A stretch of DNA of 54,516 bases, filler included, from Sluysia triapertura (taxonomy: Eukaryota), in assembly GCA_046118255.1 (NCBI GenBank). It is 4 parts of 4 records of this genome, joined end to end, with 100 filler letters (N's around TTAATTAATTAA, not from the genome) between each part and the next. Parts side by side here need not be neighbours in the genome. Positions count along the whole stretch, not along the records: positions 28,002 to 42,056 come from JBJNIA010007326.1; 3 more parts are not named here. One strand, 5' to 3'. The notes under the pieces are model-generated. The model worked only from the letters and a program-made list of their open reading frames with translations, was not told the DNA's origin and made no database searches. Below, in pieces: positions 28,002 to 42,056 of the stretch (positions within the stretch are counted from its first letter, which is position 1; every line of letters starts with the position of its first letter). The position numbers and the translations under genes were made by a program.

Positions 28002-28019
28002 ATACTTTTTATTTATAAA

Positions 28020-28119
28020 CTTTGGCACCAAGGTTCGATTTTGTTTGCGGCCCGCAAAATTTTCTCAACTAAATGTTTTGCCCTCGTGCGTAAGCGAGTT
28101 TGACACCACTGGTGTATAC
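28020..28119. mobile_element. hAT-Charlie-type element end
   Basis: Subterminal GCGGCCCGC, terminal GAGTTTGACACCACTG (ends 28111) and a Charlie-like 8-bp flank GTGTATAC. The other end is lost at the contig edge. Confidence 0.65.
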
Positions 28120-30395
28120 AGTAAAAGTTACAGTTTAGTGTTTTTTCCATTGTTAATTAATAAATAAATAATTAGTCAATTAGGTGGCATAGTATTTATA
28201 CATTATAAAGCGTGATTTTGAATTAACTCTCAGAAAGTTACATAAACTCGTTTAGCAAATAGTTAAATTATATAGGCAGGTTTTTAACAAGAATATAAAA
28301 CGCATACGCGAATCCATAGATGGAAACTAATTTTGCATTTTAAATATAAAAAATCTTAGCTGTATTTACTTTTTAGAGGATTTGCAATACTTTATTAACA
28401 TTTTCGTTAGAAATGTAATTTTTCTGGAAACTAATTAAGTGTGAAGGATTTTTGTCAACTTTGTTCATGTTTGTTTTCTAAATTGAACATTGTTGTTTAA
28501 AGGAATTTCTAAGTACTTTTTGATGTTTATGAAAATAACTTAAACACTTTGATAGCTTTGAATTATAAAGTCGGTGCTTCTGAACATTTTAATGTTTTTA
28601 TTCAAAATGTTTTTTCCTTTTAAATTATTTTCAACAATAGGTACAATATTTATAAATGCATAATAATAACTTAAATCAGGAATTGATTTTCCTGAGTTAC
28701 ACATTAAAATAAGAAAAATATCGAATGAAATTTGATGAAATTTTCATAAATAAAGTTTGATTGCATAAATAATAATTTCATTTAAAAAGCAGAAATTTAA
28801 TTTTTTTATCAGCAATTGATAAAATCAATTCATTATCATTTGATTAGTAAAACAGTTTTGACTACCAATTTAAAGCAATATTTAAATCAATGAGAAACTT
28901 TGTGGTCATTGAACATTTCTAAAAGTTGCAAAAACACTTTAGTTACGGTCTACTTTTATTAAATTTTATCAACTTTTGTTTGATTTATTACAAACTAAAG
29001 TATTTTTCGATATTATTATATTATGTTTTTCTGTATTTAACTTTTGTTAATATATATAAAGTTAATTATAAAGTTCATTTTAAGGATAGCAATTTCTCAT
29101 AAATGTTAAATTATCTCTTAGTATAGATTTTTCTTTAAATATGCATTATTTAAAGGTTTTTATACAAAAAAATGAGTAGAATGTACTATGTAATTTTTTT
29201 AATGACTTAAGTGAGTTTGCCTGTAATTCAAGTCTTGTAAATGATCATAGGTTTGTAAAGGTATATAGCATATGTGTATAAAATAAAGTATAAATAAAAT
29301 ATTAATGATTAATTGCCATTTAAATGAAAAATATGATTAGTAATATTTTTATAAAATTAATGGCTAATAAATAAATCATTTTAAGACAAAGTTTATGACT
29401 TGTAAAATAAATAGATTATTTCTGCAGAACTAAATGCATTAGAAACAAATTTCTTTGATTAATGAATAAATATTCAATCAAATAAAATAAACAAATCATT
29501 TTTCTTTAAAAGATAAAGGTAAATTTTTATGATTAATGAAATAAATACTTAGATATTTTAGTCAAATAAAATAAACTATTTTTCTGTGAAGAATAATTTT
29601 TACATACAGTGGATTTAAATTGATTATAAATAACAAAAAATTATCTCAATACATAAAACAGCAAAAAAACTTAGAGTTTGGTGATTGGAAATTATTATTT
29701 CTACGCTTTCAAAAAAACATTCATTCTTCATTTCTTCAATGTCAATGATAAAATTGCTCTATAATGCTTTAGAGTTAAAATCCAGGTAAAATCTCATCAT
29801 TTATATATCCAAGAATTAATCCTGGTTCAAATTATATTTTTTTAAAATCGATTTTGATTAAGATTATTTTATTCTTATTTATTTATTTTATTTCATTTAT
29901 TTTGAATATTTATATATCATACGTTGTAATTGTTTTACTTGTAGGATTATATGATTAGACATGACATTATTAAGATATTTATACAAAATTTTATTTCCTA
30001 CAAATTTTATACAAGTAATATTTTGAAAAGAAACAACAAAATGATATTATATATATTAAAATTTATATATAATATAAAATTGTCTTGAGAATATATACTC
30101 GATCATATATTCATGAGTTTGTTGGATCCTAAAATAAAAATTATCACATTTAGTAAAAATACATTAAAATTGTTAATTACTTTAATTGACTGTTCTGATG
30201 AACATCTTGGCAAATATCATCTACAATCTTCATTACTTTTGATATAAAACCAATATTTTAAATATCCCTTCGACTACCAAATATCAAGTAGAATTAAATA
30301 CAAAATCTTCAACTTCATCTGTTCTCTGCAAATGCTCGTCTAATTTCTCAATAACCCGTGTTGATTCTTTTGATTTAACATCCTCCGTTTGGTTA

Positions 30396-31463
30396 TCAAC
30401 TTTTATTTGACTTCTTAGAATCATGGAATTCAGCATTATTTGCATTTTTAAATACTCTTCTAGTAGAAATTCGTCTTCTTGTAAAAGTATTACTGAACAT
30501 CGAAGTATTTAAAATTAACTCAGAATTAGAAGGATCTAATTTACATTGTACACATGGCCATGTAATAAACTCTTTTAAATGAAGTTGACGGGTTCTCCAA
30601 TCGTACTTATCGAACGATATTTTATGACTGCCAGGTTCTTTGACACGATTCATCATATTAATTGAATTTAATTGTTGAGGATTCATATCTATAGCTATAA
30701 TGATAGAATTATTAGACTGGATAACTAAATTATTCAATTTATCAACATTTGATTCATCCATGTTAATCATATTTACGAATTCATAATCGACATGACTCCT
30801 AATAGGTTCTTGCTCAATTGATTCGAATAATTCTCGAAGATTCTCCGACTTAAAATATTCGCCAACATTAGATTGCTTCAAGTTGTTTATAAAATCACTG
30901 CATGACATTTTTGGATACATTTGATTTTGTAAATGTGCATTTAATATAATCAGTGCACAAACTAAAGTGTGACATTTATATACAGACGGGTTACAGAACG
31001 TATATCGTTCTGAAAATTGATGCATAATGCGTTCTCGTTCTTGTATTTTGCCATAAAGTGTGACTTTGCTCAGAAATTGCCGTAGTGCTTTATCAAGTCG
31101 TAAATTTGTAAAATCAAAAAGATTTGAGAATTCTATTCCAACAACTTGACTAAAATAATTTCTTTTAGATAAATGTTTTTCAACATCGATTAATCTGAAT
31201 TCATTATATTCGAATAAACGTTTTACTAAACGCTTTGCTGCTTCACGATCAACAGGTTTTGAAATTTGATGATATACTTTAGTTACATATGTTTCGTCTT
31301 GATTATTAACTAATAATTTCATTACATCATATATTGTATCAATGGCATTAAGTGTATGCAATGATGAAGTGTTGATTGAGATTTCATAGTGATCTTTATA
31401 GCCTTCAGAAGCATTTCGTACAACATCATTAATACTACATTTCAACTCGCAAATTCTATCCAT
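30396..31463 (-). CDS. PSD/EFA6-family Sec7-domain protein, divergent (catalytic Glu->Lys; degenerate PH start); possibly a young pseudogene
   Basis: DREAAKRLVKRLF...HLSKRNYFSQVV...FDFTNLRLDKALRQFLSKVTLYGKIQERERIMHQFSERYTFCNP...HTLVCALIILN...KMSCSDFINNL matches EFA6 Sec7. KEPGSHKISFDKYDWRTRQLHLKE resembles the start of the EFA6 PH domain. A protein-like +1 frame continues past the stop to ~30281. Confidence 0.8.
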   Translation of the reverse strand: MDRICELKCSINDVVRNASEGYKDHYEISINTSSLHTLNAIDTIYDVMKLLVNNQDETYVTKVYHQISKPVDREAAKRLVKRLFEYNEFRLIDVEKHLSKRNYFSQVVGIEFSNLFDFTNLRLDKALRQFLSKVTLYGKIQERERIMHQFSERYTFCNPSVYKCHTLVCALIILNAHLQNQMYPKMSCSDFINNLKQSNVGEYFKSENLRELFESIEQEPIRSHVDYEFVNMINMDESNVDKLNNLVIQSNNSIIIAIDMNPQQLNSINMMNRVKEPGSHKISFDKYDWRTRQLHLKEFITWPCVQCKLDPSNSELILNTSMFSNTFTRRRISTRRVFKNANNAEFHDSKKSNKS

Positions 31464-31944
31464 TATAAGTTGAAGAATTAGTATATTTTTGTTTTTTGAA
31501 ACTTACAAATCTAAATATTTTATTTTTTATCTTTTATACAGAAATAATTGTAGTAGTAAAATTATGCTGAAGCTTATTTTTATTCTAAACAACAATATCT
31601 TTGAAAGTAGTGGAATTGCACCAATAAAAATAGTCTAAATAAAGTAATAACATACAAATAAAAGCGTTAACACGCAATTATTTGATATTGTTATAAAATC
31701 ATTCGGAATGTTTGTATGTTCAAATTGTAATTATCCAATTATGGCAAAATTATTTAACTCAATGTTGTAGTATAGACAATGTAGACACTTTTCTATGTAA
31801 CAATAGTAACTATTAAGTATGTTTGCTTTTGTATCATTATTATTACACAATTCAGTTCCTCGGTTCAAACGACATGTCCGCACAAGGCAGCGCTATATGA
31901 TTGGGCTTTAATATTTCTATTAAACTAAAAGATGATTTGAAAGA

Positions 31945-32013
31945 TGATTGGACGTCCAAACTGAATAAATAAATTTACAACGTAACGATGGATTTGGTTG
32001 GATATCCAATCAA
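31945..32013 (-). promoter_or_regulatory. double ATTGG-N-CCAAT palindrome, second copy
   Basis: Minus strand TTGATTGGATATCCAACCA...TTTGGACGTCCAATCA aligns with 1537-1607 (69 vs 71 bp). ~480 bp upstream of the Sec7 ATG. Confidence 0.5.
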
Positions 32014-32527
32014 TTGTTATATAATTTAAGATCAAATTGCGAATAAATATATACAGCAAATTAAAAGTACTTCTGATTAATTATGTTAGTTGTCTGTGTA
32101 TCATAATTTTGACAGGTTGTATCTAATTCACTTGGCAGCAACCAGGATTAATGTAGTTATTTGCTTCAAACCGTAGTAATGATAATAATAATAGTGAATA
32201 TTACGAGACTAATAATAAATAATTAAAGTTAAATAACATTAATATCAGAAACAAGATAAAATGCATAAATTCTTGTACTTTTATATTACATGATCTTTCT
32301 TTTTTAAAAATACAAAAATACTTCTTACGTTAAAATTTCTTGATATAAATTTAATAAAATTCTTTTCTTTTATTACTTAATTTCTTATGATTTATTTTCT
32401 TCTGGAGTTATTTAAAAAGAATTGATTAAAATAAATTCTTATTGAATTAAAAAATAACTTTGATGTATGAGTTTAATGTTTTTCGATTATATAAAAGATT
32501 GAGTGTTAAAAGGTTGTGAAATTGGAA

Positions 32528-32720
32528 TGTTTCGTATCTTTACAATCACGTCCTCTTCGAGTTTAAGACGTAATTTGTAAACGAACCCAGAGTATAAAAT
32601 TATATTTTGCTAGGTAAAATTAAGTAGAAGAAAAAAAACAATATTATTATTACTTTTAATTATGCGTCTATTTCAGTAGAGATATAATTTGACTCTCTCA
32701 TGAAGGAGAACCATACTACT
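32528..32720 (-). mobile_element. LTR-like unit at the head of cassette B
   Basis: 3' hairpin TTTACAA/TTGTAAA with inner ACGTC/GACGT, ending GATACGAAACA, then directly a C/A-rich tract. 5' boundary uncertain. Confidence 0.35.
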
Positions 32721-33977
32721 GACTAAAATCAAATTTTAATCAATCTATAAAATTAAAATATGTAATTTTATATAATTTTAAAAAGGTATAAGACAAATGG
32801 TTTGAAGGAACCAAATTGAATATGAAATCAAAATTTAATACATCAAATGGTTTGAGCAACAATAGGTTTATATTTCATATTTCCACTGTCGCATTATCGG
32901 CAACACCGGATTGCCAAGGGTCTAACTCCAAATGGATTATTCAAATAATGGAAATATTCAAGCTCTCTATTCAAGACAGTAAACGGATATTGTCGATGTT
33001 GTCATAATTTTCTAAAATATCTTATTCCGATAATACTGAAATTTCGGCTAAGCAATTTTATAAAAACATTGATAGTTTCATTTCAAATTTATTAACAAGT
33101 TTCGATTTAACAAAACAATTAAATAACAAGATAATTAACATGAAATGTAGTAACAAGAATAGAAGAAAAATGAATTTCAATAAGATTAATTTTAGATTGT
33201 AGGTGTGTGTAAGTGTTGTCGTGAGTATTATTATCATTATGATTGTAATTGTTGCTCTGAGTATATGTTGAGCTTGCATTGTGTTGTTTGACGAGTATTT
33301 CTGCTTTATATATGTTATTTGTTCATTTGTGTTATGTTGAGTAGAAACTTTTTTTAATTTTATATTGTTAAATAATGAAAAAATAGGAATTTCTTTATTC
33401 TTTAATATTTGTAGAGTTTATTCTCCAATATTTATAAGAAATTCTTTTCGTATGTTGCTTTGGAAACATCTCATCATGTAGTATTTTTCACTGATGCTAT
33501 ATTATGGCCAATAATTTTTTATTTTTGTTCTAGAATAAATTTTCTATTATAAATTTTTCTTTATACTCAATTTCAACACATGGTCAGTTTTACATTATAA
33601 TTAAAAATATATAAATATAAATCCTGGGCATTTTCATTCTAGACCATAACTGTGACCATCACATTCATTTACATTCTCTCTGATAATGTGTATTAATTCG
33701 CTAATGCTAGTGCTTCATATTCATTTCTGTTTTACCAGCATTACACATTTTTATTTAGTCCGTAAATTTACATTTGACTAATTTAATATGTTAAGTTAGA
33801 TTCCTCTTTCTTATTATTCTGTTTTATTTTATATTATTTTTATTTTCTAATTTTGAAATATTTCTTTTTCATTTTCAGAATTTGTTTCTTTTTTTGACAA
33901 CAGTAGAGTTTGTATTTTGCTGAAAAATTTATTTATTTTATAATTAAATTATAATCTTTCATTATAATATTTCATTA

Positions 33978-34519
33978 ACGTCGGATAAAGGGACGGACAA
34001 ACCGGGCGACTGTCTTGGCGCTGATATAAAAATGAATTTTTTTACATTCATTATTTTTTTAGATTTTATAAATTAAAATCGATCATTTTTCATGAGACAT
34101 GGATTTTTTTAGCAAGGAATAATAACAAATAAAGATCACAACGCTAATTTGTAAACTCTTTACAAATGATTTTCAAAACAAATTAATTTAATTAACTATG
34201 TTATTTAATTTTTTACAAATAGCATTTTAAAAATCTTCTATGCCTAATGTATGCAAGAGGAGTAGCATAACTTACTTTTCAAAGTTCTCGCTCCTTCCTC
34301 GCTCAAACTTCAAATGTTATTCCATATGTTGTATCGCTTATTAGTAAATAACAATTGTATTATTTTTTAAATAAGTAAATTTTTTACACAGTTATTTATT
34401 GTGTAATTTTTATTTTTTTTTGCTATTTTTTTAATTTGCAGTAAATTTTTATATTCTTGTATGAAAAGGCGACAAATTTTGTTTTGCCCGGGACGCTGAA
34501 AACCATAGATCTGGCTCTG
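33978..34519. mobile_element. non-autonomous hAT-like element
   Basis: Right end reads CAGAGCCAGATCTATGG...CCCGGGCAAAAC on the minus strand. Decayed GC-rich left end CGGATAAAGGGACGGACAAACCGGGCGACTG. AT-rich interior. Confidence 0.5.
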
Positions 34520-34787
34520 CTTGCCATATTTACATTCTCATGAATTTCATTTATTAAAAATTGTAAAAAATTATCAGAGAAATGTGATGGAATGTTAAAA
34601 AAATTTGTTTAAATGGTAACATCAAATGAGCAAAAGAAACGGCAAACAATTAAAGCAGAAATATTTAATGATTGTACTATTATTTTAGAAGATTCTCTCG
34701 CGAGCTTTCTAGTTTATAAAAGTATTTTGCTTTTAAAATAATTTATAAAGTAGAATTCATTGAAAGTTAATTTATATAAAAAGTATT

Positions 34788-34926
34788 NNNNNNNNNNNNN
34801 NNNNNNNNNNNNNNNNNNNNNNNNNNNNNNNNNNNNNNNNNNNNNNNNNNNNNNNNNNNNNNNNNNNNNNNNNNNNNNNNNNNNNNNNNNNNNNNNNNNN
34901 NNNNNNNNNNNNNNNNNNNNNNNNNN
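34788..34926. other. assembly gap
   Basis: Run of N. Confidence 0.95.
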
Positions 34927-35399
34927 ATGACATCAAAATGAGTGCATGGAAGAAAAGATCAAAGAAAATGAAATAGGTATATTAATTTTAGAAGTAGCAA
35001 AATTTATATATCCTAAAAATTATAAGTTCATTTTAAAAATGAAAGAAAATAGTAATAAAAGAAATGGAATAACTAGCTAAACACTTGTATTTATCTCACA
35101 AATAATTTTGACATTATGTCATAACACATTTTACAAAACTTAAATTACGCCTTATAACTCTACAAATTACTCAGACGGTATCAATTGAAAATGTCTTAAT
35201 TTATCTACAAAATGGCTTTAAAATAAGTTTCATTATTCAATAAGAATTATTTTTAAAACACTTCATTTGATTATTTTGTATAAGTTCTGATTATTTTATA
35301 TATGTAATCAAATAATCTTAACACTTTGTTAACATATTGTATGCGTTTTTCATAGTTTGTTTCTGGAGTGCTGAGACATTTGAGTTAGTCAGCGGATAT

Positions 35400-35600
35400 C
35401 GTATAAATACGATGGTAATTGTATATATGCTGGGCAACGCTTGGCATTATTTATTCCCAAAGATTTTGTTTGTTAATTTAGTCGTTCTTTTTCTGATTTT
35501 ACTGAATGACCAAACTGCAGAAAATTCACCGAAAAATGTCCACTGTTCGCAGCGATGTGCACCCGCATGTCAATATCTGTATTCAGTGATATTATCATTG
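35400..35600 (-). mobile_element. possible transposon XPG/PIN-like domain remnant (Academ-type)
   Basis: NTDIDMRV...LGNK*CQALPSIYTIT resembles DTDV...LGxxLCxALPxFHAxTGCD. Frameshifted. Confidence 0.25.
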
Positions 35601-35999
35601 TGTGAAACAATAAAACAGAATTGTATTTTAATAATTTCGACGTTCTGTTTTCCGCGTCTTCACAATTTTTTAATCTTTAATTCCCATATAACTGCATTAA
35701 ACAAAAATTTGGAATGATCGATTTTATTTTTTACATTTTTATTTACAATATTTTTATATAATATTTATTTATTTAAGTTTTTCATTTTATTTTAAGACAT
35801 ATTTACAATTGCATGTTCATAAAGAACTTAAAACTTTTAAATTTATTGAAGACGCCTATTTTTTCAGGAAATAAAAACTCATACACCTTTTTTCAGCTTC
35901 TCCATAAGCGATGTTTCTTCGTCCGATGAATAACTTTCTGATTCAGAATTATCAAATTATTCAAGTCTTGATATATTGCCAGTACGGAAAATTTAAAAA

Positions 36000-36185
36000 T
36001 GTTGAGTTGTCATCACAAACCTCTTCTAAAAAGTAAGTCTAAATAAGACCCTCCGTTGAATAATTTAAACACGATTAAAGATAAATGATAAAAGTTGATA
36101 ATTCGTTTAAGTAAATTGCCAATTATACTTACAGAAACTCCAACTCTACGTTGTAAGTCGTTTAATGTAACCGGATCCTGATACA
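36000..36185 (+). mobile_element. short LTR-like unit (186 bp)
   Basis: TGTTGAGTTGTCATCACAAACCTC ... ACGTTGTAAGTCGTTTAATGTAACCGGATCCTGATACA. Both ends match the 21337/46155/50951 family. Confidence 0.65.
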
Positions 36186-36910
36186 ATTTATTTTGCCATA
36201 TAATAATGCTTAAGAAAACTGCAGCAAAACACTAAGTAAACTAAAACACTAAATAAGGATTAAAAACCAAAATTTTAAAATACATTAAAATTTTTTAGGA
36301 ATAATCAGATTTCATTCAAATTTTAATTTTATTTCCCTAAACGTTATAACAAAGATGCATTGGATACCTTTTCAAAAAAATGAACATTGTACTAAAAGAT
36401 AAAAAGGAAATTCATAGTATATGATATATCAATTTATACAAATCTAATACTATAGAAATATGTTATTCACTATAATACTTCGGGATTAAAATAAATGTTG
36501 TCTCCTTTTGAAATATTCATTTATTAAAGATAAATGACACGCTTTCCCTCTTACACAATAAGAAAATGCGAAAACACTCTTCGTAGCACAGCAGCACAGT
36601 TTCATTTACAAGTCTATAATTGTGCAGCAACCATCTTATAAGACTTTATTATGTACAGACTACGATAACACAATTTGTATTCTAAGCATTTATAAAATTA
36701 AATTCTGCTTTGTGTCATGATGTGTAGTGTACAATATCAACTTACACAAACTAATTTCGCATTTGTTCTATGTTTAGTATTACGCAACATGTAGGAATAA
36801 TGCATGCATTTAAATATTCATAATTTCAAGTATTTAACGAAAAGATCAAAGTAGAATTTGACAAATAATAAAGAACATTAATATGAATGTTTATCTTTAT
36901 ATATTTTCTT

Positions 36911-37940
36911 ATTTTCCCCGAAAATAAGACCCACACTGGAAATAAGATCTAGTGTGATGTTTCAGGATGATTTTAATTTAAGACCTACTCCTAAAATAAG
37001 CTCTTGTTAATAGCCGATTAGGATACCTAATGAAAGTCAATGAATGGCTTGAAACTGAGTTCAGCGCATTCTTCCGTATTTTAAGCACAATTAGCTTTAA
37101 ATTATAATACATTCATTGTCAAAACATTCTAGTTCACTCTCTGACTGCGACTGACTACAAGATTCTGATTTTGATTCGCTTTCAAACAATTCTACAAGTA
37201 AGATTTTATTAGCAATTATCAATGCATTTCTCCTTTGTCGCACAATATCTATGAGAATGATTTAAAATAATGAAATTCAATTAAATGAAAACTCCGCAGA
37301 AACTTTGGAATCCAGTTACTTATGCTGGGTGTTTTTCTTAATCTAAAAACATAACCTACAGCAAAATAATTAATTATTATGAGTCCATTTACAGTATACG
37401 ACTTACTGTATACTGTATACGGCGTACCTGTAAAATTATCAAAATTAATCGTACAAAATATGCTTTGCCTTAACTCAAAAATAATGGGCAAAAATCGTCG
37501 TTTATGTCAATTAACAACAGATAACTTAAAAAACTAATTAAGACCAACGCTAACTTAAGAGATATTTAAATTAATATAAACAATTCAAGTAAATAATGTG
37601 AGTATAAAAACGTGTCGTCTATTATATCTTTAAATCTGAATATAATGACCGTTACAAGTTTTAAACTTAATGAAATAATGTTACAATTAATATATACTGG
37701 ATTAAAATTTTATTTAACTTTAAATTATTTGAAAAAATAGAGTAATTACAAACTAAATTCAAGTAAAAAGAATTCAAGTAAATGTAGATTGGTTTTCATG
37801 TTTTTTGTATGTATAGAAATTCATAATTTCATAATACTTTGTGATTTTATTTTTCGTTAGGTGAAAATAAGACAACCCCAAAAATTAAGCCATAGAGTAA
37901 AAATTAATATAAGTCCTGTCTTATTTCCGGAAACATGGTA
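36911..37940. mobile_element. Tc2/pogo-like non-autonomous element
   Basis: TIRs TTTCCCCGAAAATAAGAC / GTCTTATTTCCGGAAACATGG-TA, with repeated subterminal AAAATAAGAC motifs at both ends. Confidence 0.7.
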
Positions 37941-40675
37941 TAAAAACTAAAAATTTAATTTATTTATAATTATTATATAATTATTATTCAACAAAATTTA
38001 TCTAATATTTATAATCTATTTCATCAAAAGTTAAATTATTCAAATCAAAGTATCTTTAAAATTAGATATAATTATATCTAATTAATTATTATGAAATTAA
38101 AATTAATTATTTCAAATATTATAATGTAACTTCATAATTTTTAAATTTAAATTTTAAATAAAAACTACGATTTAGTTAAAATGAACATGATTCTCTCCTG
38201 AGAGTATAAAAATATGTATGAAAATTTTATTAAAGCTGATTATTCATTTTAATATTGAACATTATTTGAATCGTTTGAAAATTCTAAGAATTATTTTTTG
38301 CATAGCCATTAGAGACGTAGCATTAGTCAACGTAAATTAAGGATGTATCTAGTTTCTAATCGTGAAACTAGAGATTAATAAAACAAACAATGATTGTTAA
38401 AATATGATAATCATTAATTTTATGAAAATAAATAAAGTATGTATATTTATTGCTAAGAACGGATTTAAAAGTAATTTTTAAGATAGAAATATTAGAAATA
38501 AAATCACTATCACAATTGAATTGTGTAAATATAAATATAAAAATACAACAAAAATAAATTAAATTACTAATCAAATTAGATCATAATTTTCTTGTTCAAT
38601 TATTTTGCTATTCATTGTTTTCTTATAGAGTCCTTTTATAAATAAGATTTTTCAATTCAATCAATAGTGAAATTTCTTAACTAAATAAATTTCAACAAAA
38701 CACGCAATTTATTGTTTTATAAATATTTGTATATTGATTATTTCTTTTCGTTTATACTTCTTTTAATTTTCTATACTTTAAAATACAGTGAAGCCAACAA
38801 AAATGTAAAATCAAGATAAATTTACATAAATTCGTTTAAATTATTTTGATTTTATTGATAAAATCTTATTTAAATTTATTTTTCTATGTATTTTCTTGTA
38901 TAATACATTGTAAAACAATTTTCGAGATTAACCAGTCACTAAAAAGAAAATTTAATTTATGTATTATCGCGCATTACTTGCAAAAAGCTTCTAATACAAT
39001 TGTTTATTATCAAATTGCTTACGAAATAGTCCTAATGCCTATCGACTAAGGGTTCGCCTGTTCTTTAGGACTTGAGTTTCGTCGAACAACATATCTAGAG
39101 GATTTTGGCTGACCTTTAGTTGCATTATCAGCGAGGGTCTTTAGCTACAGTCAATAGATTCAGTTAATTAATTCTATTTCATCAATGGCTAGCTGAAGTA
39201 ATTATAGGGGAAAAAGTTAATTCTTGACAAATAAATCCTAGTTTCTTTATATATTATTTATTCGCTTTAATTGTTATTTGTCAGATTTTCTCCTTCCTGA
39301 TTGTATACAGACCAATAAACAAATTAAATGTTATGAGTCCGTCTACGATCCTAGACACACAGGTTAAGGCTAGTCCGAAGGATTTTCAGAAAATAAGATA
39401 CAATGGATGGGTAACACGCTTGGAAATTATTCGAAGTCTAATTTTGTTTCTTGTTAACTTAACAATTTGATTGAAGAGTCTTAAGAAGAGTCTAAAGTTT
39501 ATTAGATATAACTATGAAGTAATTAATTTGTAAATTTTTTGAGTCTAATTCCGCTCTGGGGCGAGACTGATTAAATTTGAACCTTACTTTTATTTATTCA
39601 CTTTACGCATAATCGCAAGGCTAAATAAAATTCTGATTTTACTTAGGTTCTCTTTAAACAGAAATAGATAATTTTTACAACTCGATATTATACACCAAAT
39701 AAACTTTGACTGACAATTTTAATGAAAAGTTATAATTATAGAAATTGATATAATTCAATCTTGATCCAATTTATAGGGATCAATTAAAAAATAATTCTAT
39801 AGAAAGTTATTTATTCTATTGGTTATGAATAGAATAAATAAAAAGACTGTTAAGGTACACTAATACAAATTGATAATACTAATTATACAATAATTTAATA
39901 TTAGTGATAATTGTAAAAACATTTTTGTATAGTAAATATACTGAATTTTATTCGGATTATAATTACTAGAATAATAATCCTTGTACATTTTTTCGACACT
40001 AATTTTAAATTTGTGAATTACTTAAAACAATAAAACTAACGATTAAACCGATTTTTTAAATTTATAAATTGTCACTATCATTTTTCATTCCAAATTATTT
40101 TCTCGTTAAGGACAAATGATTTGATCAATGGATAACAGTAATTTATACTTTTTTAAATTTATGAAACAGTTATGCAAGAATCAAAGAATTAAAATAATCG
40201 TGAGACATTTAGAAGATATGTTGTATCTTTTACACTTTTTTATTTTACAAATTATTAATTGTTAACTCAATAATTAAACAAATTCAGAATCTCGATATAT
40301 TCTTTGAATTATCACAAAATTCTAACTAAAAGATATAAATTGTTCTTTATAACAACGACAATACAAAGTACTCTTTACAACAAAATACAAATTATTCTTT
40401 ATAGCAATATTATAAGTTATTCAGTAAAAACAAATCACAACCATGGGGTGGCACAACTTTATATTTTCGCAGACATATTAATACAAAATAATTCACTAAC
40501 CCTTAATCCTCTAATTTCATATACTTATTTTAATCAATTACTAAAGAATAAGCCTTGATATCACCATTAACTGCAGATGAATCAAGGCAGAGTCCCAACA
40601 ACGTCCTATCTCTTGCTTTTTATGTCTGATTCTGTGCAAAAATGTAACTGCTTTTATAAGAGTTTTATGACGCTG

Positions 40676-40811
40676 TAGGAAATTAAAATTAGAAATTGAA
40701 CAAGACGCAAATTAAAGCTGTCTATTCTCTTTTAGCCGACTAATTTTACTGATTGAATTTTTGACAGCAATTTTCGTCTATGTTCAAATTCAATCTAATT
40801 TTAATTACCTA
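40676..40811. mobile_element. foldback MITE-like inverted repeat
   Basis: ~47-bp imperfect arms (TAGGAAATTAAAATTAGA..TTGAACAAGACG..GCTGTC / GACAGC..CGTCTATGTTCAA..TCTAATTTTAATTACCTA) and a 40-nt loop. Confidence 0.65.
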
Positions 40812-40984
40812 ATGATAATGTGATTTGCGGTAAATAATCCCCTTATCTTCTTAATATCATCTCGTTAAAATTTAAAATCATTGTTATAATGATGCTATAC
40901 TAATAACGTCATTTGTCAACTTAATTCAAAGATAAAATTTATGAAATTATGAATTTATTTCTCATAGGAATATTTTGCATAATA

Positions 40985-41410
40985 CGTTGTGCGTCAACCA
41001 TACGTCGCACCTCAAGTTCAATAACACATTTAAATCAGTATCTCTATAAGCATTAATTTAATATATATTTTATTAATACTTAGACATTGGAACATATATA
41101 ATCTATAATTTTAAATTACAAAAGAAATAACTATTTTTTACGTTATCTACGTCGACGTGCTTCGCAACACTTCATCACTAAAACCAATAATAAAATTCAA
41201 CATTTGATATCAAATTTGATATCATTATATCATGAGCAAACATTTTCTACTGAGTTATCAAATTAAATAAATTTTAATTAAATTAATTAACAAATGTACT
41301 TTAGTATTTTAACAAATAAAGGGTTGTTTCTTCGTAATTCTCATTGTTTTTTTCTTAATTCAAGGTTTTTACATATTTATCTTACCCTTACAATTCGTCA
41401 GAATCCTCTA
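40985..41410 (+). repeat. dispersed repeat, copy 3
   Basis: Aligns with 17330-17700 and with the reverse complement of 18250-18540. Confidence 0.7.
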
Positions 41411-42056
41411 TCTCAATTCCTTAATAACGTTCACCTTATTCTATTATCCTGAGTCTTAAACCTTATATCTATATTTACTCTTCACTAATCCCAACAGATA
41501 GTTAAGGATTTTTGGTTTGTCTATGTCGTTATTTTTGCTTCTTTAAATAATAATCTTTTACGTTTGACCTTTAAATTAGATACTTCATACTAATGTATTT
41601 CAAAACTATTTATAAGTACTTCTATATTAATTAAAGTACTATTTCAATTATCATAATTCAATTAACTGATAAATATTTAATACTTAAACTATTTGACTAT
41701 CAATGTTTATAATAATAATTAATAATATAGTAAATATTTACAAATAATAATAAAATATACAATACATTTATATATGCATGATTCAATATAATAATATGTA
41801 AACAATAACAACAATTTAACATTTGGGTTATGTATATAAATATACAGTTTTTATTGATATTATCTTCAAGTTAATCTTTGTTGATTGTTGCGGTCGTCAA
41901 ATTTCCTAATATCGTTATATTGTTCTGTAAATCTTCACTTTTAAATCTAATGATGAACTGTTAAAGTATATCTGACTAAATGATAAATTTTGTAAGATCT
42001 GTACTTAAATTCAACCATATTCTATTACAAAGACTATTATAGAATGTAAAACTAAT

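Follow-up and report, generated by a model that had tools for sequence, protein, structure and literature searches.

The window, the whole 54,516-nucleotide stretch of Sluysia triapertura DNA that was analysed, contains an open reading frame (ORF) whose product, judged from its sequence, is an EFA6/PSD-derived Sec7 protein with a lysine in place of the catalytic glutamic finger. The reading we consider most likely, with a probability of roughly one half, is that the ORF encodes a maintained, exchange-dead protein, that is, a pseudo-GEF. Exchanging this glutamate for lysine is the standard laboratory route to a dead, Arf-GDP-trapping GEF, and a natural copy with its fold kept under selection would, if the reading is true, be a Sec7 pseudoenzyme. 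With it one could investigate whether Sec7 domains serve the cell as inhibitors of Arf signalling or as scaffolds for it, and it would provide a natural sequence showing which further changes, here in motif 2, go with a finger reversal reported to be dominant-lethal when engineered. If the ORF is a young pseudogene, the finding is an ordinary one.

The open reading frame and its Sec7 domain

The 14-kb piece that carries the ORF (28002-42056) is AT-rich, with a GC content of 18-30% per 1-kb interval and ~24% around the ORF, and includes a run of 139 N at 34788-34926. The original prediction that a frame stays open for 355 codons in such DNA holds: the ORF is complete, its first ATG lies at its 5′ end, and the same bases contain 18-52 stops in each of the other five frames. 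It is the sole long ORF of the piece, where the longest other open stretch has 131 codons, no other genes, tRNAs or Rfam families were detected in these 14 kb, and nothing there looked human. About 2.4 kb of the piece is left downstream of the ORF, down to the edge at 28002. GC is 34% over the 100 nt past the stop and then drops to the level of the flanks. A +1-frame stretch of 74 codons (30287-30508, minus strand) overlaps the end of the ORF and extends 37 codons beyond its stop; it matched no family and no PH profile. The features of the ORF are collected in Table 1.

Table 1. Positions of the ORF and its features along the window.
Feature	Position	Strand	Remarks
ORF, 355 codons + stop	30396..31463	-	Open frame from 31502
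N-terminal region, aa 1-72	31248..31463	-	Weak likeness to flatworm PSD pre-Sec7 part; low model confidence
Sec7 domain, aa 73-221	30801..31247	-	Pfam, AlphaFold, Foldseek
Motif 1 GKIQERER, residues 138-145	31029..31052	-	Relatives: GE[TS]QERER
Codon AAA = Lys139, glutamic-finger position (ARNO E156, EFA6A E242)	31047..31049	-	
Motif 2 LNAHLQN	30924..30944	-	Relatives: LN[TS]DLHG, LNTDLHG/N
SVYKCH, 4-residue gap site	30969..30986	-	Coincides with trematode intron 2 (SYSSE|DTCH)
C-terminal tail, aa 222-355	30399..30800	-	Without recognisable domain; low model confidence; stop-free, codon-position periodicity
PH beta1-beta2-like stretch, marginal, aa 270-302	30558-30656	-	Inside C-terminal tail

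The Pfam Sec7 family (PF01369) matches the central domain with an E-value of 2.2e-29 and 102.8 bits against a cut-off of 22, and Pfam finds no F-box or other partner domain in the ORF. When the ORF was compared with PDB sequences by HMMER, the top match was 1r8s_E, the engineered ARNO E156K, with Lys139 aligned on the mutant lysine. In an AlphaFold2 model for which 71 relatives were aligned, the pLDDT is 86-98 over aa 70-222 and confidence is low elsewhere; Foldseek superposes the domain on the Sec7 domain of ARNO (4z21) with an rmsd of 1.7 Å over 152 columns. By profile and model, the ORF is a member of the Sec7 superfamily, and its predicted structure keeps the all-helical Sec7 fold. Upstream of the domain, the likeness to flatworm PSDs consists of a ...YHQ.pK..DR..A motif.

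A glutamic finger has been described for all known Sec7 domains. The predicted change of GETQERER to GKIQERER is present in the ORF, as is the AAA codon, which in this one assembly is a single transition from GAA. Among the best 152 relatives the finger residue is Glu in 150 and Asp in 2, and a MAFFT alignment of 135 rows has 131 Glu and 4 Asp at this position; Lys occurs in neither set (0/152; 0/135), so that among the relatives sampled no orthologue or close paralogue has a Lys finger and the Lys is unique to the ORF. The second predicted change, of NTDLH to NAHLQ with a short deletion before it, was found as LNAHLQN with a 4-residue gap ~10 residues upstream. Ile140, Ala176, His177 and Gln179 are each seen in 0 of the 135 aligned relatives. 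A competent Sec7 Arf-GEF has the invariant glutamic finger and a motif 2 of the form LN[TS]DLH; the ORF has Lys139 and LNAHLQ in these places. Conserved columns are kept at 10 of 15 positions within the motifs and at 38 of 44 outside them, an enrichment of motif changes that is not significant.

The effect of the same substitution is known from engineered proteins, and here the original prediction that they are exchange-dead agrees with the literature: EFA6 E242K is “ARF6 activation incompetent” (bioRxiv 10.1101/150037), and ARNO E156K is “dominant-lethal” and yields an abortive Arf1-GDP-GEF complex, 1r8s (PMC2823772). Even the conservative ARNO E156D lowers activity by 99.74% (PMC3314957). 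By analogy with these mutants we infer that the ORF product would be exchange-dead.

Relatives, introns and the PH domain

An HMMER scan of 1.84 billion representative proteins with the ORF gave 1646 matches, the best of which are trematode PSD/EFA6 proteins from S. mansoni, S. japonicum, Clonorchis and Paragonimus, followed by molluscs, Macrostomum, a monogenean and a cestode. The S. mansoni relative XP_018653328 is annotated as “putative arf6 guanine nucleotide exchange factor”. A word-indexed protein search returned Schistosoma fragments alone, the exact ORF protein is absent from a collection of 15 billion proteins, and the nearest protein has 59% identity over 102 columns. In the Sec7 domain, identity is 54-56% between the ORF and trematode PSDs and ~82% among the trematode PSDs themselves. 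The full-domain IQ-TREE phylogeny places the ORF in a starred clade with the trematodes (97/97), with the monogenean outside, on an end branch of 1.14 substitutions per site as against ≤0.1 for the trematodes. The AU test does not reject a tree in which the ORF groups with the monogenean Cichlidogyrus (p 0.30). Both the top matches, all of them PSD/EFA6, and the starred flatworm PSD clade place the ORF in the EFA6/PSD subfamily; on this sequence evidence it is closest to the EFA6/PSD proteins of neodermatan flatworms, and it derives from this family.

A tree of the N-terminal half pairs the ORF with P0026 as its sister (97/93), a 307-aa singleton PSD fragment from a flatworm (MetaClust UPI00060BCF1F) for which no closer kin was found in the protein collection. 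P0026 and the ORF have ERIMH and DREAAKRL in common, and the finger of P0026, one of the two Asp among the best 152 relatives, is itself not Glu (TLTGDTQERERIMH), which hints that the lineage had already relaxed the finger position. A second natural non-Glu finger occurs in Macrostomum lignano, where one PSD paralogue has GDTADQER and the other GETADQER. The P0026 model runs through intron 2 into a repetitive stretch, and the 1337-aa KAF6778374.1 of Paragonimus kellicotti has duplicated N-terminal blocks, with the first half of Sec7 present twice and joined by intron read-through; these duplications are probably an assembly or model artefact.

The S. mansoni region that aligns to the ORF is interrupted by four introns, which lie in R97 and D162, at the junction of Q181 with G182, and in H226, and Clonorchis has the same four; the ORF is without all of them. 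P0026 keeps intron 2, through which both it and a Paragonimus model are read. Relative to trematode PSDs the ORF has gaps of 4, 1 and 1 residues, at 30969-30986, 30912-30932 and 30789-30806. All three fall within two residues of trematode introns 2, 3 and 4, for which simple arithmetic gives a chance of ~1e-3, and the coincidence suggests that splice sites once shifted or that introns were lost imprecisely. In the monogenean Cichlidogyrus casuarinus, a single exon encodes aa 87-394 of KAL3318908.1 and runs up to a GT directly after SPYLDV, and a PH_9 exon annotated as a separate gene lies 3 kb downstream of the Sec7 exon. The two models on JBJKFK010000191.1 (L004:10001-15362), KAL3318908.1 with 394 aa and a separate PH_9 model with 193 aa, look like parts of a single PSD gene that the annotation has divided; KAL3318908.1 closes with 11 residues of intron read-through past the GT donor. 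Because the monogenean orthologue is also without the same introns, their absence from the ORF may be a lineage trait. Retroposition was accordingly downgraded as a firm explanation, the monogenean being intron-free over the same region and the AU test allowing it to group with the ORF. Around the ORF no flanking direct repeats or target-site duplications were found, and past it no poly(A) remnant. The sole candidate for a decayed poly(A) is a tract at 29868-29903, a 14-nt tandem repeat that is A-rich on the minus strand and lies ~490-530 nt past the stop; it carries no evidential weight.

The EFA6/PSD family is defined by a PH domain (PF15410) C-terminal to Sec7 (PMC6727740). The description of the ORF as EFA6-like is therefore sound for its Sec7 domain but does not extend to this family-defining domain, which went undetected both in the ORF and in the 2.4 kb that follow it. 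Pfam gave no PH match on the ORF even at E≤1, and general and flatworm PH profiles scored ~0 wherever they were applied, namely to the tail, the +1 frame and all 610 open pieces. A tblastn search of the piece with full-length flatworm PSD proteins returned nothing besides the ORF, and no C-terminal coiled-coil region was found. We also considered a frameshifted PH domain, in which the ORF end, RRVFKNANNAEF, would be continued by the +1 frame past the stop, ILRSQ..VDN..RVIEKLD (30287-30508). The idea began from a likeness, seen by eye, to beta5-beta7 and the C-terminal helix of flatworm PH domains, and was rejected when PH profiles scored near zero. Within the tail, aa 270-302 are modelled by AlphaFold as a hairpin (pLDDT 64-75), and some phmmer alignments extend to aa 300; a pairwise permutation test for a PH remnant here was marginal (max z 2.6, mean z 1.4). 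A downstream PH exon beyond the edge of the piece at 28002 is possible.

Constraint and competing explanations

The substitutions in the ORF are distributed as they would be in a working gene. The more conserved a column, the more often the ORF has the trematode consensus residue, with 19% agreement where columns vary most and 82% where they vary least (Spearman 0.43, p 5e-9). The trend is nearly as strong as that of a bona fide monogenean orthologue, for which the coefficient is 0.50. The ORF keeps 48 of the 59 columns that are ≥90% conserved, and outside the motifs it has mostly exchanged one residue for a similar one (A>V, L>M, L>I, Y>F). In a codon alignment for which the S. mansoni exons were joined, dN between the ORF and S. 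mansoni is 0.42 while dS is saturated (NG86 ~2), with 17 of 23 shared fourfold sites differing. Since nearly all of this dN falls on the ORF branch, that branch cannot have evolved neutrally over most of its length. The original prediction had set against itself the combination of a Lys unique to this copy and a dN/dS near 1; the Lys is unique, but because the long-term dN/dS is far below 1 the prediction was not overturned. Because the constraint is averaged along a branch as long as 1.14 substitutions per site, it is no proof of present-day selection.

By shuffling, the chance of a stop-free sequence is ~0.0015 for aa 1-70, <5e-5 for the tail and 0.005 for the last 55 codons, and these last 55 codons also show codon-position periodicity (p 0.001). 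Neutral evolution was simulated from the ORF itself, with substitutions drawn at the composition of the flanks; the frame was intact in 22% of runs at 0.02 substitutions per site, in 3.5% at 0.05, in 0.5% at 0.1 and in none at 0.2. By these figures a neutral phase, if there was one, can have spanned no more than roughly 0.02-0.05 substitutions per site. The marks of a pseudogene are absent, in that the frame is intact, the substitutions follow site conservation, and a dN of 0.42 stands against a saturated dS. Four tests on the sequence argue against long neutral decay, and by them the ORF is not an old pseudogene. We favour the view that it is a real coding sequence, kept by selection now or until very recently. 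Where the original prediction had left the choice between a pseudo-GEF and an early-stage pseudogene, the constraint tests fit the former better, and the latter survives as a very recent pseudogene.

Such a pseudogene, or a dead processed copy, only lately made or released from a fast-evolving parent PSD and with the Lys as a neutral change, would account for a good deal of what is seen at the locus. All four trematode introns are gone, the PH domain was not found, the ORF is solitary amid 14 kb of otherwise non-coding AT-rich DNA, and its protein is missing from the protein collections; the Lys is confined to this copy among the relatives, on a very long branch, and the change from GAA ACN to AAA ATA (G-to-A, C-to-T) fits AT-ward drift. 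We nevertheless think this explanation improbable. The neutral phase that the open frame permits, ≤~0.02-0.05 substitutions per site, contrasts with the five changed motif residues, the unrecognisable tail and the branch ten times as long as those of the orthologues that have already accumulated, and with substitutions that track conservation. The poly(A) tract and target-site duplication of a processed copy were not found, and the absence of introns is non-diagnostic when the monogenean orthologue is without the same ones. An error of base calling or assembly, or a rare allele, with GAA as the true codon and a normal if divergent exchange factor as the product, is far less probable still. The AAA codon is one transition from GAA and the finding comes from one assembly, but a single error cannot restore a canonical active site because the neighbouring Thr140Ile and the three motif-2 replacements, each in 0/135 relatives, are changed as well.

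The remaining alternative bears on gene structure alone and can hold together with the pseudo-GEF reading: the ORF may be a large exon of an ordinary multi-exon PSD/EFA6 gene with its PH and coiled-coil exons >2.4 kb downstream, in which case the Lys would lie in a full-length Sec7-PH protein. This is a possibility to be taken seriously, though we lean away from it. Cichlidogyrus provides the model, with its Sec7 region in one exon and a PH_9 exon 3 kb further on; a clade of the ORF with Cichlidogyrus passes the AU test (p 0.30), the two have LRQ[FY]L, LFES, Y213F and the loss of W223 in common, and the piece offers only 2.4 kb in which downstream exons could have been seen. The full-domain tree, however, joins the ORF to the trematodes with the monogenean outside (97/97), and the nearest relative, P0026, retains intron 2. 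The 134-residue tail is stop-free (P<5e-5) and periodic over its last 55 codons (p 0.001), so a splice donor must sit very near the stop; the sole candidate, AGA|GTATTT near aa 337, was picked by eye. The rest of the piece yielded no PSD exon.

Possible function and comparison with known systems

If the pseudo-GEF reading is right, the gene would encode an EFA6/PSD-derived protein that keeps the Sec7 fold and bears Lys as its catalytic glutamic finger. The Thr next to Lys139 and three motif-2 residues are also replaced, by states seen in no relative. Judging from the engineered Glu-to-Lys mutants of ARNO and EFA6A, such a protein would not catalyse the release of GDP from Arf. It might act as a non-catalytic binder or trap of Arf-GDP, held in an abortive complex like that formed by E156K, a mechanism that we infer by analogy. 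Alternatively, the motif-2 changes could weaken Arf binding, and the protein may then have a role independent of exchange or of Arf. As to structure, the gene might stand by itself and encode Sec7 alone, in which case it may be a retrocopy, or the ORF might represent one large exon within a PSD gene of several exons, with the PH exon past the edge of the piece. Going further, one could propose that a parasitic flatworm expresses this charge-reversed, EFA6/PSD-derived protein under selection as an endogenous Arf-GDP trap, forming with P0026 a non-catalytic Sec7 lineage. It would be the genetically encoded equivalent of the laboratory dominant-negative E156K and E242K proteins, but we hold this extended proposal to be unlikely, and the dominant lethality of E156K seems to make an unregulated natural trap costly.

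The closest parallels to the active site are the engineered proteins ARNO E156K (1r8s) and EFA6A E242K, which have the same residue change at the same aligned position of the FG-loop motif. They are laboratory mutants of otherwise canonical domains, whereas the ORF is natural, carries Thr140Ile in addition and has three motif-2 changes that may alter Arf binding; the mutants have been assayed as proteins (see above), and the ORF is known from sequence. The nearest full-length relatives, the trematode PSD/EFA6 proteins, have the CHTLVCAL and KMSC.DFINNL signatures in common with it. Unlike the ORF, they have a Glu finger, a canonical motif 2, four introns, a PH_9 domain and 1000-1500 residues, and the ORF branch is ten times longer than theirs. 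Cichlidogyrus casuarinus KAL3318908.1 resembles the ORF in having Sec7 and linker in an intron-free exon, a short Sec7-only product and several ORF-like residues; it differs in its Glu finger (LLGETQEKER), its PH exon 3 kb downstream and an identity of 46%. The loci differ in composition too, with a GC content of 36% in S. mansoni, 45% in Clonorchis and 42% in Cichlidogyrus, as against ~24% for the piece with the ORF.

Sec7 proteins that do something other than activate Arf have been described. FBX8/FBXO8 is a Sec7 protein described as suppressing, not activating, ARF6 via ubiquitination (PMC6727740), and so is a precedent for the use of the Sec7 fold otherwise than in Arf activation; unlike the ORF, it bears an F-box, and its subfamily is another one, derived from IQSEC7. 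Within the EFA6 family itself, C. elegans EFA-6 has a GEF-independent function that maps to an 18-residue N-terminal motif (PMC4596636), making it an EFA6-family protein able to act without exchange activity, as is proposed here for the ORF.
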